A stretch of DNA of 63,592 bases, the filler included, from Pelomyxa schiedti (taxonomy: Eukaryota; Protista; Evosea): NCBI GenBank assembly GCA_020536535.1. It is 6 parts of 6 records of this genome, joined end to end, with 100 filler letters (N's around TTAATTAATTAA, not from the genome) between each part and the next. Parts side by side here need not be neighbours in the genome. Positions count along the whole stretch, not along the records: positions 1 to 10,150 come from JAHLWZ010000741.1; 5 more parts are not named here. One strand, written 5' to 3'. The translations under genes were made by a program, and so were the position numbers. Within the stretch, counting starts at the first letter, position 1, and each line of letters starts with the position of its first letter. Shown here in pieces: positions 3,910-9,306 of this stretch. Below the pieces are notes generated by a model that saw nothing but the letters and a program-made list of their open reading frames with translations, had not been told where the DNA came from and made no database searches.

Positions 3910-5372
3910 CTATGGGTCAGAGAGGGGATTTGTTGAAGTTGGTGTGCAGACAGGTGTGTATGTGGGTGTTGTTGTTGTGATTGCTCCAGTAGCGGTGCTA
4001 TCGTGTGAAGCTGCTGTGCTTTGCGATTCAGTATTTGTACTTGCGGAGGTTCCATTCAAGGGGGAGGTCACCGGGGTTGTTGTGTTTGTTGTTGTGACTG
4101 TGGATGAGGTGCTGAGGTTGGAACCAGTACCGGTTGTTGTTCCGTTTGTTGGCGATGATGAATTGGCGGGGTTCTTGGTGGTTGTGGATGGTGATGATGA
4201 TGGAGTGCTGCTGTGCGGTGTGGAATTGGATGATTGATGGCTGAGTGTGGGGGAATCCTTCTTGGAATGGTGGGCGGGTGAGTGGTGGTGTGAGCGGTGG
4301 TGATGGCTGTTGTCACTACTGTCACCTTGTGGGGGTTCCGTGGAATGGTTAGATGATTTGTGGTGCTTGGGGTGGTGAGATTCTGCGGGATCGTGGTCTT
4401 TCTCGTGGGGAGAGTGAGTGCGCTCGGAGTGCGATCCACTTACAGAAGCAATGTACTTGCTGGGAGGGATGACACTTTCCTCTTTTACTTGGTTGATCAT
4501 CATCAGCAAATGTTTCAACCTGGGGCGATTTATAAAAGTGGTGCTGTTTGGGGAAAGTACCCTCGTTTCCAATAATCTGCTTCGGTCAGCCCTTCTGCAA
4601 CGAGCTTCCACATTCTGTCATCAGTTTGTAATACAATCCCAGTAAGTATTCGTTCTGATAAAGTAGCCCGCTGTTTTCCAATCTGAAGGGACTTGACGGT
4701 GTGCAAATCTATGACTCCCTGTGCACAATCAGGCCCGGAAATTCTTAAACGATAGAGAACACACCTTCAGACCGGACTTACTGCAAGAAGCATCAGTGTA
4801 GTATTTGAGTTGAGTCAAGTCATCACTAGTATTTTGAAACCACCTTTGTAATACAAGCACCGATCAGTCAACGAACAACATACATGCAACATAAATCTCA
4901 CAATATTGCATACACAAATAGAACATAACGCGAACGGTTTAACATTGTTGTATTGTGCATATAGAGTCCCATAATTATGCAATAAAGTAAGACGATATGG
5001 GGAATAAGGATACCTCCTATTCCAAGTCCTGTGAATTGCACCTTCTTTCATGAGCCACCCCCTCACAACAACTTCCTCCTCATTCATCACATACCAGGGC
5101 ATCCCATAATTGCCCCTCCCCTCTCCCTCCCGGTCCTCATCGTCGCTGTAATCCGACTTGAAAGCGGCCGTGCTTATCGGATGATGGGACGAGTGCGACC
5201 ACACCGGGTGTGGTGACGTGGCAGCCGACCCTGTGACTGCAACGTAGTCCCCGTCGTTGGCGCTGTTTGTGGGAAAGAAGCCGGGCACGAACATAGCGAT
5301 TGTGGGACTGCTAGTGCTGTTGTGTGTGGTTGAGAGGTTACGTCCAGACGAGAAGGAAAATGGTTGATACAT
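3910..5372 (-). CDS. PH-domain protein with His/Ser/Thr-rich disordered C-terminus
   Basis: RGWLMKEGAIHRTWNRRY, GVIDLHTVKSL and WKLVAEGLTEADYWKR are PH strand-1 and terminal-helix motifs. They are followed by the low-complexity tail of ORF 3910-4611. Confidence 0.8.
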
Positions 5373-6126
5373 TGTTGGATGGGTGTTTGTTTGTTTCAAC
5401 AGACCTTTGGGCTTTGGGGTTGTTCCACCTTTTCTTTAGGAAATTGTTGTTGTGTATTTTTTCACAACGTTTCGCACGTGATCGTCACTTTGAACGTGTG
5501 CCATCACAAGTCAAATCTGATCCTGAAGCTCTGAGTTGGACAAAGAAGCGAGGAGGCAAATGCTGATAGCTCTCGAGATTGCTGGATTGAAAAGGGCTCA
5601 CTGAGGCGAAGTGGCAACAGTCAGAATCTGAAAGATCCCTTTTCCTGCGCTGAGAAAAAGGAAGTGGGACCCGTCCCTTGTTCAAATGTCTTTTCTTCGG
5701 TACCGCTTTCAACAAAGGAAACTTTGTGTGATCATTCCACTGATAAGAAAGGCGAACTCTACACGTGAAACTATTCCAGATAAGTTCACAGATCGACTAA
5801 CAAAATGCAAGTGCACCCCCATCGGGGCAATTGATCCAATCAACGAAGGGAAAAAGGATTCACACACGGAACCTTGAGCTAAAACAGCAGTAGGAAAAAA
5901 CAAACAACACTTTTAAAATCAAGGAACTCCGCCAACCAACATACCAGACCAGAAACAAAAACACAAAAAACAAAAAAAAAAAAAAAAAACCACCTGGTGG
6001 CAACACACTACCTTCCAAACAATAAAGCTACATACACCCACATTTTTGTTGTTTTTGCTGTATTTTTTTCATTCAACAACTATACGTCTATTTGTGTGAG
6101 ACCCACCACCAAAGAAAAAAAATAAA

Positions 6127-9100
6127 ATGATGGAGCACGAGCACATGCACAGGGCGTCATCGGCGCCCTCGCGCGAAAGAAAGAAACTCGAATCACCGGA
6201 CCTGGCCCAGAATAAAAACAAGAAGGACGATCTATGGAAGCGGGCCGAGTGGCTGGCCGTGATACTGTTCATCTGCTGCGCCTGTGTCGCTGCCGCCGGC
6301 GCCGTAGTTGTCTCAGTATTCGCTGTCAAGCTGGTCGACACTATATCCGAGCAGACAAGGGTCTACGTCGAATCTACCTCCGCTTCCGTAGCTGGTACTT
6401 TTTTTGTTTTTGCGTTTGTACGTTTTTTTTTTTTTTGTCTTTCAAAGAAAAGAGTTTCGTCTAACGATTTATTACAGGTCCAATTTCTTCATTTTGCGAA
6501 ACATTGCAGCCTGTAGTAATGAACCTTTGTTCTGACATTGCGGACGCACTGACCATTCCACGAACTCCTACTGCCGAAGAGGTTGCCACTTACGGCTTTT
6601 GGTATCCTCACCCACTCGTAGCCTAAATAGCCAAATTAACGAGCTGTGTAGGAACTACACTCGGCCCGATTGCCCTGGTTGTAAGGCATTTGCAACACTG
6701 GGAAACTGGGGAGGACCAGCACAGGTCCTGTTCCTGGCACAGAATCACAATGCAACTGAGCTGCAAGATATTGTAGAGCTGTACTTCTGGAGGCTCGGGG
6801 GATTGGCGCCAATGATGAAGAACATAGAGACGGCGTGGGTAGATGTTATTCAACAGGTTTACTTCACAGGAAGGAATGGATACTCGATGATCTACCCCTT
6901 CTTCCCTCTCTTCGTGGTGCAACTGATGAACTTTTCCCCGGAACCACCAGTAACTCCAGATAGCCGAGGATTCTTCTGGGTGGGCCCGTACATCGACCAA
7001 GTGACTAGAACCTGGGTTTCCTCGTTCTACGTTGATCTCTATGACTCGAGGATCCCCAATAAACTCACAGGGGCGGTTGGAAGATGTGGAGTGGATGCTT
7101 TCGTGACCCAGATCGTGTCACAAGTGGAAAAGATGACCGAAACCCTTTCCAATGGCGCCTACGTTGTACTGTCCGCGTACGACGGAACACTGATGATGAT
7201 CCCAGAGAGTGGGTCCGCGGACTGGGTCAGTGGTGAGGATGCCTCGTATCGGGCTGATGACGGCACTTTCAACTACACCGAGATTCTCTCGACTCCGAAC
7301 TACAACCTTACAGAGTGGAACATCTTCGCAAACGCGAGATATGCGCACATTGCTGCTGCGATCCAGCCGACCCTCGCGGCTTATGAGGATGGTGAGACCT
7401 ACATCGCCACCATAGATTTTGCTACCGGCAAGAGGTTTATTTCCTGGTGCTTCGTACCGCGATCCATGTGGATTGTCATTTCTGTCATTGATGAAGAGGA
7501 GGCAACAGCTGACGAGAGGCACGCCATGGTCCTCATGGTTTGCCTTTCAACAGTTCTCGGTGTAACCATGGTCGTTGCTGCTGGTGCCGTTGGCGCTTAC
7601 AGTGCTGTCACACGAAAGTATGCTGGGCTCACAGCAAAAATTTCTGACCTGAACACTGAACTGGAGGAGATGAAGGGGCAATCACAGAATCTGGGACAAA
7701 TCCGGGAGGATATGGCAGCCGTTGGGGCCTTAACCAGCGGAATGAAAGAGGTTTCAGAGCGAATAGCCCCTCAATTTCTTACACTTCGAACTAGATTGCT
7801 GAGACGTTGAGAAACATTGCTGAACATCCTGACAAGCCTATAACAGAAGAGCAAATCCAGCTCCTGCAGAACGCAAGGCAGTTATTACTTTCAAGGGACT
7901 TTAAAGGTACAAAAGCTAGACCATTGCATTTTACACACTCAACTGGATACAGGAGTGAAAACTACGACAACACTAAACTCTGATCAAAAGCAATTCGTAC
8001 ATGATTGTGGCATTGAAATGGACCATACAGGCACATCTTCAATGATGGACACCCTAGTTCGATCACATGCAACACCTGGAGGAGCACTCGCCACTGATGA
8101 TATAATGAACGTTCCCAAGACCGCTGTTGGGGATTGGAGATTCAACGTCTTCCAAGTAAACTTGGTTCTTTTCTTGTATCCTACTCATTTTGCAAGGTGG
8201 CGGAAGCTGTGGGCACAGACAACCTTTTGCAGTCTGTAGTCTATTCCGCTCTTACTGAGCAGAACGTTCTTTCATCTGGGCTCCCACTCAACGTTAACCA
8301 CCTTCTCAAGTTCGTCCAGCACCTCGAAATGGACTATTGCTCATCCTCCGACCCCATAAAAACCACCGCATCGAAAGCTCCCCGTGTGGAAAATCCGTAT
8401 CACAACAAGTACCACGCCGCTGATGTCACTCAAGCGTTCCACTCCCTGCTTCTCCGGGCAGAGGAATCATCTTCGTGGTTTAGGAAGTCATTAACACCTC
8501 TGGAACGTCTTGCCTGCATCGTTGCCGCAGCGGCACATGACTACAAACACCCTGGACGGAACAACGTCTTCCTTCACAACACCCTTCATCCTACTTACAT
8601 CACATTTGTGGAGTCTTCCCTTGAAAGGTCCCACGCCGCTTTTTCCTTGACAGCCTTATTTTTGGATCCGGACTTTCAGCCACTTGCTGCTATGTCACGC
8701 CAGCAGAAGACCGAGTTCCATTCTCTCGTTGCCAAGCTTATTTACGCAACGGATATGGCTAAGCATGTGGAGCTTGTTGATGCTCTCAAGGCTTGGGTTC
8801 CACCAGATGGCACAGAGGACCCTGAAGGAAGGGATAAAGCAGGAGTGGTGGCTTCTACACCCCCAGGCAAACTTCTCATCCTCCAGCTATTGCTGAAGGC
8901 AGCCGATATTAGCAATGCGTACAGGGAGTGGGAAGTTTGTCAAAAGTGGACCTTCAACCTCATGAAGGAGTTTGCGCAACAAGGAGCCGAGGAGAAAGAA
9001 AAGGGACTGCAGACATCCAAATTCATGGACGGCAGGGCCAATGCTCTCGAAATGCAGGTGAGCGGAAACAATTTCTCTTTTCCATTTTCCAGCCGCTAAC

Positions 9101-9306
9101 ATACCCAACAGAACTCCTTCGTCCCGCTGTTTGTGATTCCGCTCCTCAAGGCCCTGACCCTGCTCTTCCCCAACTTCCTCGACCTAGAGAAGATTGCATG
9201 GGCCAACCTCGCCCACTGGCGCGAGCTTCCCACACCCGGCCGCGGCACCCCCGCAGTCACTCCTTCCCTCCCACCCAGCGCCAGCAGGACAACCAACACC
9301 AACTAA
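6127..9306 (+). CDS. Membrane receptor-type class I cyclic nucleotide phosphodiesterase (TM - dCache-like sensor - TM - coiled coil - PDEase)
   Basis: TM1 WLAVILFICCACVAAAGAVVVSVFAV. Cache motif RGFFWVGPYIDQVTRTWVSSF...GAVGRCGVD. TM2 AMVLMVCLSTVLGVTMVVAAGAVGAY. PDE motifs NPYHNKYHAADV, AHDYKHPGRNN, TDMAKH, LLKAADISN, EFAQQG and MQ-NSFV. Stop TAA 9304-9306 after a final intron. Confidence 0.9.

Follow-up and report, generated by a model that had tools for sequence, protein, structure and literature searches.

Can a eukaryotic cell adjust the breakdown of its cyclic nucleotides through a sensor that lies outside the membrane and on the same polypeptide as the degrading enzyme? This question is raised by a gene in a stretch of Pelomyxa schiedti DNA of 63,592 nucleotides (nt), filler included, from assembly GCA_020536535.1, the whole of which we refer to as the window. 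The gene occupies 6127..9306 on the + strand and consists of seven exons separated by six GT-AG introns of 41-83 nt, giving a coding sequence of 2862 nt, i.e., 953 codons and a stop. We found that it encodes an ectodomain of the divergent dCache_1 type, as predicted from homology and modelling, held between two transmembrane (TM) helices and followed by a class I phosphodiesterase (PDE). The product is probably a single-chain, two-pass receptor-enzyme in which an extracellular small molecule would directly control the breakdown of cyclic AMP (cAMP) or cyclic GMP (cGMP). What is new is that an extracellular Cache sensor, free of a VWA domain, is combined with a class I PDE in a eukaryotic protein; neither part is new in itself.

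The predicted extracellular sensor

The sensor region between the TM helices spans about 355 amino acids (aa), shorter than the roughly 400 aa given in an earlier note on this DNA, and is split by the introns at 6395-6477 and 6602-6651. It carries the Cache signature W-x-x-P-Y-x-D...G-x-x-G-x-D that had been pointed out there, in the form of WVGPYID (6977..6997, membrane-distal module) and GRCGVD (7079..7096), both on the + strand. Such short motifs could arise by chance by themselves. The Cache assignment is nevertheless solid because homology and fold, which reach beyond the motifs, agree with it.

Similarity searches were run exon by exon or with homologue sequences. A phmmer search of 1.84 billion representative sequences with the sensor exon returned 58 proteins. 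The first 17 constituted the family itself (E 6e-172 to 3e-18; 443-1019 aa, most of them 800-1000 aa), and PDEase_I was present in 15 of these, the remaining two being truncated. The other 41 matches (E 6.6e-09 to 9e-4) were mostly bacterial sensor kinases, with dCache_1 detected in 40, MCP-like_PDC_1 in 33, a class III cyclase in two (P0157 and P0164) and GGDEF in one. In an alignment of 55 rows, W109 was invariant and Y113, D115, G146 and D148 were each conserved in at least 90 % of the sequences. The pocket-lining signature (W..PY.D, G..G.D) is thus conserved, together with the framework of the two modules, over a set that includes bacterial sensors. Furthermore, a eukaryote-only profile made solely of the 21 PDE-linked ectodomains aligned with a bacterial dCache_1 kinase set in hhalign over 307 columns (probability 100 %, E 8.6e-46). 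Since the 55-row profile was dominated by bacterial rows, the search against PDB sequences was repeated with the eukaryote-only profile, which matched the dCache domain of Mlp37 (E 2.8e-9) and that of Mlp24 (E 8e-8). When the sensor exon was used by itself in a word-index search of proteins, no match was obtained, the length window of that search excluding relatives of about 950 aa; a protein-language-model search indicated Cache families and was treated as a lead only.

Structure prediction was consistent with these results. AlphaFold reached a pLDDT of only 38 when given the sensor exon as a single sequence, and the alignment-based model was used instead. With the 55-row alignment, the model (pLDDT 86.2, pTM 0.75) showed two alpha/beta modules and then one long helix, and the two Cache modules fully accounted for the ectodomain. 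All 50 matches listed by Foldseek against the PDB were dCache ligand-binding domains or dCache-containing chains (e.g., alpha2delta-1, Cachd1), each with a probability of 1.00. VIA-align gave Z scores of 10.8-13.3 over 170-261 aligned residues among the matches listed, which comprised the Cache-type sensors of PscC, PctD, TlpQ, PctA and Mlp24/37, archaeal and bacterial kinases, a few other extracellular receptors and alpha2delta/Cachd1. Based on the phmmer, hhalign and PDB profile matches and on the dCache fold of the model, we assign the ectodomain as a divergent dCache_1-type domain, in line with the fold that had been proposed for it.

The signature also bears on the type of ligand. The window sensor retains the Tyr of PY.D and the Asp of G.D, two residues that contact the amino group of the ligand in amino-acid and amine sensors (PMC8915833, PMC10589655). 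In the dCache_1AA motif described by Gumerov et al. 2022, Tyr, Arg and Trp touch the carboxylate, and Tyr and Asp touch the amino group (PMC8915833). Placement of the window sensor in this amino-acid subclass was considered; the alignment did not support the motif.

The phosphodiesterase and its connection to the membrane

The catalytic core lies on exon 6 (8197..9057), which matched the Pfam family PDEase_I (PF00233; 181.6 bits, cutoff 24.8, E 2.7e-53). The motifs YHNKYH (8398-8415), HDYKH (8536-8550), ERSH (8623-8634), TDM (8749-8757) and AADIS (8899-8913) were all located on the + strand. They provide the complete set of metal-binding and catalytic residues (YHN..H, HD..H, Asp of TDM, Asp of AAD). 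The invariant Gln is encoded by the last codon of exon 6 (9055-9057, + strand), followed by NSF in exon 7, so that the substrate-clamp Gln and Phe (EMQ|NSF) are brought together across intron 6 with NSFVPLFVIPLL in exon 7, a junction confirmed by RNA. The claim that an intact PDE is encoded here, with YHN..H, HD, D and Gln motifs, therefore stands. As judged from its residues, the domain is catalytically intact, with no sign of an inactive enzyme. Its nearest solved structure was PDE1B (E 6e-29, motifs aligned), followed by PDE4, PDE8, PDE3 and PDE7, with E values from 1e-24 to 6e-29 for PDE1B, PDE4, PDE8 and PDE7. A hydrophobic stretch in exon 7 was considered as a third TM helix and rejected, as it corresponds to a core helix of the PDE fold.

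Hydropathy analysis placed TM1 at about 6250-6327 and TM2 at about 7523-7609 (Kyte-Doolittle maxima over 19 aa of 2.87 and 2.41), thereby confirming that two helices flank the sensor. Basic residues are found at the N-terminus (RERKK, KNKKDDLWKR) and in the segment after TM2 (TRKYAGLTAK). All five N-x-S/T sequons are located between the TM helices, in exon 3, and none in the approximately 540 residues on the cytosolic side. The flanking charge and the placement of the sequons fit a predicted topology with the N-terminus inside, the sensor outside and the PDE inside.

In the AlphaFold model, an unbroken helix starts at the final strand of the membrane-proximal module, passes through TM2 and extends about 50 residues into the cytosol. 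Reading the sequence by eye revealed a 4-3-4-3 hydrophobic spacing after TM2 (L, I, L, L, M in YAGLTAKISDLNTELEEM), for which the family consensus is Y-A-x-L-x-N-K-I-x-D-L-x-x-E-L. The coiled coil that had been proposed at this site is hence represented by a heptad-spaced helix, as recognised by sequence reading and from the AlphaFold helix. A linker of about 100 aa, conserved in the family, connects this helix to the PDE. Within it, at 7973-8023, we noticed the family-specific cytosolic motif LNSDQKQFVHDCGIEMD (consensus L...Q.QF..DCGM.V), which is a candidate transducer element. Neither this motif nor the helical segment of exon 4 had a match in Pfam. Pfam likewise detected no HAMP, MCPsignal or VWA domain in the window exons or in family members and no rhodopsin in the window exons, where the TM helices number only two. 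The description of the architecture as chemoreceptor-like consequently applies to the sensor and the membrane topology and fails for the signalling part, which has neither HAMP nor an MCP signalling domain.

Gene structure, expression and family

The coding region is spread over three frames of the + strand, as seen in the six-frame translation of the window, which has the character of eukaryotic DNA with 47 % G+C. The gene model was based on GT..AG sites, frame continuity and homologue alignment, and all exons were covered in tblastn searches with P. schiedti paralogues. The limits 6127-9306 proposed earlier proved exact, with ATG at 6127 and the TAA stop at 9304-9306; the exon picture implied there was incomplete, as the 50-nt intron 2 had to be added.

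Exon 1 (6127..6394) encodes the basic cytosolic N-terminus, TM1 and the start of the sensor N-terminal helix, and aligned with residues 17-96 of the closest homologue, P0121. Intron 1 (6395..6477; 83 nt, phase 1) separates it from exon 2 (6478..6601), which encodes the remainder of that helix and the conserved segment TPRTP..E..(S/T)Y, and aligned with P0121 residues 94-137; according to its consensus, the segment is also conserved in bacterial dCache kinases. An alternative acceptor of intron 1 at 6509 was rejected on account of an in-frame stop codon. Intron 2 (6602..6651; 50 nt, phase 2), whose split codon TG|G encodes Trp, is the sole uncertain intron of the model. The acceptors 6621 and 6630 would keep the frame with introns of 20 and 29 nt, but would insert residues absent from every homologue. 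Acceptor 6651 was chosen because it alone yields the ATYG(F/Y)W|NYT of P0121. Exon 3 (6652..7750) harbours the two PAS-like dCache modules, TM2 and the heptad helix (7610-7750). It is followed by intron 3 (7751..7794; 44 nt, phase 0), over which the joined reading agrees with P0001 and P0121. Exon 4 (7795..7906) represents a helical, family-conserved part of the cytosolic linker. After intron 4 (7907..7952; 46 nt, phase 1), exon 5 (7953..8155) contributes the LNSDQKQFVHDCGIEMD motif and, at its end, the first helix of the PDE domain (DWRFNVFQ). Intron 5 (8156..8196; 41 nt, phase 0) and intron 6 (9058..9111; 54 nt, phase 0) enclose exon 6. Exon 7 (9112..9306) supplies the final PDE helices (NSFVPLFVIPLL), a Pro/Ser/Thr-rich tail and the TAA stop. 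All of these features lie on the + strand, and all introns have GT..AG borders. P0121's own gene has introns at positions that match introns 1 and 6.

The whole stretch was present without differences in contigs of one DNA run, and parts of the gene were found in three single-cell RNA-seq runs (X1, X2 and X3) of the same study. RNA contigs omit exactly 8156-8196 (run X1, joining 8155 to 8197) and 9058-9111 (all three runs, the cut being placed within a 3-nt ambiguity), demonstrating that introns 5 and 6 are really spliced. The sensor exon was represented by RNA contigs at 7136-7291 and 7391-7607, and a contig covering 8025-8155 was joined by splicing to exon 6. In the 3' direction, contigs extended to 9407, in the 3' untranslated region. 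At position 8607, one RNA contig had C in place of the T seen in DNA, a synonymous difference (TTT to TTC, Phe) that is probably an allele or an error rather than editing.

Independent evidence for the fusion came from homologues. Protein similarity is unbroken over exons 3, 4, 5 and 6 and every junction. The complete architecture was also encountered in Trinity transcripts of Mastigella eilhardi (e.g., P0180, 947 aa), and two metagenomic homologues have the same fusion as single, uninterrupted open reading frames (ORFs; P0127, 970 aa, and P0131, 1019 aa). Together with the open frame through six introns, these findings make it very likely that the sensor and PDE exons of this paralogue reside on one transcript rather than on separate ones. 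An additional M. eilhardi transcript, P0001 (503 aa), has an ORF that is labelled 'complete' and starts just before TM2, without a sensor; it reflects either incomplete assembly or the existence of a short isoform made up of TM2, linker and PDE alone.

The paralogue count that had been proposed as a check yielded at least nine in P. schiedti, eight of them annotated, in addition to the window gene. M. eilhardi contributed at least seven transcript groups and metagenomes five representatives. Named members come solely from these two species, both belonging to Pelobiontida within Archamoebae. All named entries are annotated as PDE4, PDE7A or PDE1C, with only PF00233 recognised in them. The window sensor is 63-69 % identical to those of four P. 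schiedti paralogues and grouped with them (SH-aLRT 100). The window protein is identical to none of the paralogues and had no full-length entry in the protein collection searched. Its G+C content, the style of its introns and the study that produced the reads agree with P. schiedti as the source. At least nine paralogues point to a diversified sensor family. On contig JAHLWZ010000463.1 of P. schiedti (L001:25-11490), three dCache-PDE paralogues of 948, 950 and 951 aa are arranged head to tail, indicating recent local duplication.

In an unrooted tree of sensors, the 21 PDE-linked domains formed one group (SH-aLRT 99), and the cyclase-linked P0157 and P0164 were placed between this group and the bacterial kinases. 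Outside that group, the P0164 sensor ranked with the nearest relatives of the PDE-linked sensors. P0164 is a P. schiedti protein (KAH3766451.1, 776 aa) that is annotated as 'response regulator' and actually combines a dCache sensor with a class III nucleotidyl cyclase (Guanylate_cyc, E 4e-22); P0157, from a JGI metagenome, is likewise a fusion of a dCache sensor and a class III cyclase. As the P0164 fusion demonstrates, related sensors are wired to the synthesis and to the breakdown of cyclic nucleotides in one genome, and both may respond to one kind of input. On the unrooted tree, the simplest reading is that the sensor would be of bacterial origin and was later fused to a eukaryotic PDE.

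The full-length metagenomic homologues without introns (L002:3001-5913 and L003:3001-6060) were observed on contigs of 177 kb (66 % G+C) and 85 kb (40 % G+C). A bacterial source was considered for them and discarded: their neighbours were short ORFs with wide gaps and no Pfam matches, which is not a bacterial-looking arrangement. Given these homologues, the range of the family may exceed the two named genera.

Two further open frames of the window lie upstream of the PDE gene on the - strand. The frame at 3910-4611, rich in Ser, Thr, His and Pro, had no Pfam match and explains a marked GC skew in this area (+0.48 at 4001-4500); the neighbouring gene may have here an exon of low complexity, possibly of mucin-like character. 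The frame at 4815-5399 contains VVVRGWLMKEGAIHRTWNRRY, which resembles the start of a PH domain; no Pfam match was obtained for this single-exon piece. Overall, Pfam searches on the ORFs neighbouring the PDE gene in the window yielded nothing useful.

Precedents, rival explanations and meaning

Bacteria routinely fuse dCache to kinases, MCPs, cyclic di-GMP enzymes and class III cyclases. The bacterial dCache_1 receptors (kinases; PctA, Mlp37 and Mlp24; cyclic di-GMP enzymes and cyclases) commonly have the TM-dCache-TM layout with the output after TM2. They share with the window protein a homologous sensor, the same predicted fold (Z 11-13) and the W..PY.D and G..G.D signatures. Their output is a kinase, MCP, GGDEF, EAL or HD-GYP domain, whereas a eukaryotic PF00233 PDE is found here; moreover, the window gene has no HAMP, contains spliceosomal introns, belongs to an amoebozoan genome and shows no recognisable amino-acid motif in the sequence alignments. 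On the side of the enzyme, the characterised class I PDEs (PDE1, 4, 7 and 8; RegA; apicomplexan multi-TM PDEs) have a homologous catalytic domain with the same metal-binding and substrate-clamp motifs, and their regulators are cytosolic (calmodulin (CaM)-binding, UCR, PAS/REC, GAF) or plain membrane anchors. We know of no extracellular ligand-binding domain in any of these proteins.

Direct fusion of a receptor to a class I PDE has a precedent in choanoflagellates, namely the rhodopsin phosphodiesterase (Rh-PDE), a single polypeptide whose membrane receptor is joined by a helical linker to a class I PDE (10.1101/2020.04.14.040642; PMC8774190). The list of class I PDE regulators in the earlier note (GAF, PAS, REC, UCR and CaM) falls short in this respect, as it omits rhodopsin-PDE (10.1101/2020.04.14.040642). 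Rh-PDE is the nearest functional analogue, sharing one-component control of cyclic-nucleotide breakdown, which is putative in the window protein. It differs in its input, namely light received by an intramembrane microbial rhodopsin, compared to a putative chemical input via an extracellular dCache domain and two TM helices. With an unrelated sensor and an origin in Opisthokonta instead of Amoebozoa, it is an analogue and not a relative on the sensor side.

Eukaryotic dCache domains are themselves documented. They have been reported for alpha2delta/CACHD1, for kinases of fungi and plants and for a Naegleria cyclase (PMC4822843), and no PDEase appeared in those supplementary tables of that census that were available. 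Naegleria gruberi D2VLR9, covered by the same paper, and P. schiedti P0164 resemble the window protein in that a dCache_1 sensor is followed by a cyclic-nucleotide enzyme after TM2 in a protist; their class III cyclase makes the messenger, whereas the PDE degrades it. The extracellular dCache_1 domains of alpha2delta and CACHD1 were structural matches to the window model (Z 11-12), but have VWA inserted in the Cache domain and no enzymatic output; the window family has no VWA. According to Gumerov et al. 2022, all eukaryotic dCache_1 proteins they found contain a VWA insertion, in a survey aimed at amino-acid-motif domains (PMC8915833). The Mastigamoeba genome paper reports expanded cyclases and PDEs and leaves the Cache domain unmentioned. 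We found no paper that describes the TM-dCache-TM-class I PDE architecture, that joins dCache_1 with PDEase_I or that joins P. schiedti with phosphodiesterase; the architecture is thus not already well described as far as our search goes.

In analogy to bacterial dCache receptors and Rh-PDE, we propose that the protein would act as a dimer whose dCache domain binds a small molecule, most probably through its membrane-distal module, and that binding would displace TM2, as it does in bacterial dCache receptors. The movement of TM2 would then travel along the helical linker and alter the access of substrate to the PDE domains. An outside chemical would in this way change the breakdown of cAMP and/or cGMP without a G-protein-coupled receptor (GPCR) or G protein.

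Several points weigh against this proposal. Ligand control of the PDE is what we infer from the architecture alone. When Pfam was run per exon, only the PDE was recognised, with no dCache_1 (PF02743) match to the window ectodomain even at E <= 1, and the dCache_1 matches seen in four of the 17 family members were sub-threshold (E 5.3e-05 for the best; no score above 23 bits, the cutoff being 45). The structural model comprises the sensor without its N-terminal helix from exons 1-2; in the solved domains, about 40-80 residues precede the aligned part, a stretch that corresponds to this helix. In sequence alignments, made without superposition of the pockets, the carboxylate-holding Arg-x-Trp was not recognisable upstream, so that an amino-acid ligand cannot be assumed. 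Neither HAMP nor any other characterised transducer lies between TM2 and the enzyme, and the coupling mechanism is therefore without direct precedent. In the three single-cell RNA-seq runs, no RNA contig of this paralogue bridged 7607-8025; continuity of sensor and PDE on one mRNA was consequently not directly seen for it. Finally, the protein could sit in an internal membrane instead of the cell surface.

The divergence of the ectodomain is also what would be expected if the protein were a constitutive, membrane-anchored PDE, its Cache fold being a degenerate relic that serves dimerisation, anchoring or protein contacts and passes no small-molecule signal. A sequence too divergent for Pfam dCache_1 fits such a relic, and so do the Arg and Trp positions of the amino-acid motif, which were not recognisable in the alignments. 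So does the fact that alpha2delta and CACHD1, the solved eukaryotic dCache proteins among the structural matches, are auxiliary subunits; even Rh-PDE is reported to be only weakly modulated by its stimulus (PMC12004702). We nevertheless regard this explanation as unlikely, since a relic would hardly account for the pocket-lining signature and module framework conserved over 55 sequences that include bacterial sensors, or for an unbroken helix that connects the sensor via TM2 to the heptad stretch and continues into a family-conserved linker, as expected of a signal path. Likewise, at least nine paralogues with divergent ectodomains look more like a sensor repertoire than an anchor.

The gap at 7607-8025, along with the lack of a full-length entry for the window protein in the protein collection searched, would be compatible with a gene-model artefact, either adjacent sensor and PDE genes or a pseudogene misread as one gene. 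This is very improbable in view of 953 codons that run across six canonical introns without an in-frame stop, homologue similarity that continues over exons 3, 4 and 5, and a fusion that recurs in ORFs without interruption and, at the transcript level, in a second genus; in addition, two introns are spliced in RNA and DNA contigs cover the stretch without differences. As to location, the topology is fixed relative to the cytosol, but the identity of the membrane is not. A lumen-facing sensor in a vacuole, phagosome or symbiont compartment could sample lumenal metabolites, and P. schiedti lives with intracellular prokaryotic symbionts (PMC10579272). No plasma-membrane sorting signal was identified in the protein, and there was no positive evidence for an internal location either. 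Also speaking against a lumenal location, the family is expanded in M. eilhardi and present in environmental contigs of very different G+C. We consider a lumenal sensor improbable, and because its sensing logic would be identical, it represents a variant of the extracellular receptor-enzyme rather than an alternative to it.

The breakdown of cyclic nucleotides in eukaryotes is, to our knowledge, thought to be regulated from inside the cell (Ca/CaM, phosphorylation, cGMP-GAF, REC), with light-gated Rh-PDE as the one known exception. If the window protein is the receptor-enzyme proposed here, it would be the chemical counterpart of Rh-PDE and a mirror image of the receptor guanylyl cyclases, and a bacterial plan, in which sensor, TM helix and output domain follow one another, would have been re-used with a purely eukaryotic enzyme. 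Ligand-gated PDEs would also be usable as chemogenetic tools alongside Rh-PDE and as small-molecule-gated modules for cell engineering. A dCache_1 family without VWA qualifies the generalisation of Gumerov et al. 2022 (PMC8915833), and the Pelomyxa database entries 'PDE4', 'PDE7A' and 'PDE1C' are explained as dCache-PDE fusions.

More tentatively, and with the odds somewhat against it, free-living archamoebae might possess an unrecognised class of eukaryotic chemoreceptors. Their dCache sensors, probably bacterial in origin, would be wired to opposing enzymes, at least nine PDEs and a sister cyclase, so that different external or symbiont metabolites could shift cAMP/cGMP up or down independently of GPCRs. 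In that case, the PDE members would be natural ligand-gated phosphodiesterases, and the family would provide a testable set of orphan receptors in organisms of anoxic sediments with prokaryotic partners.

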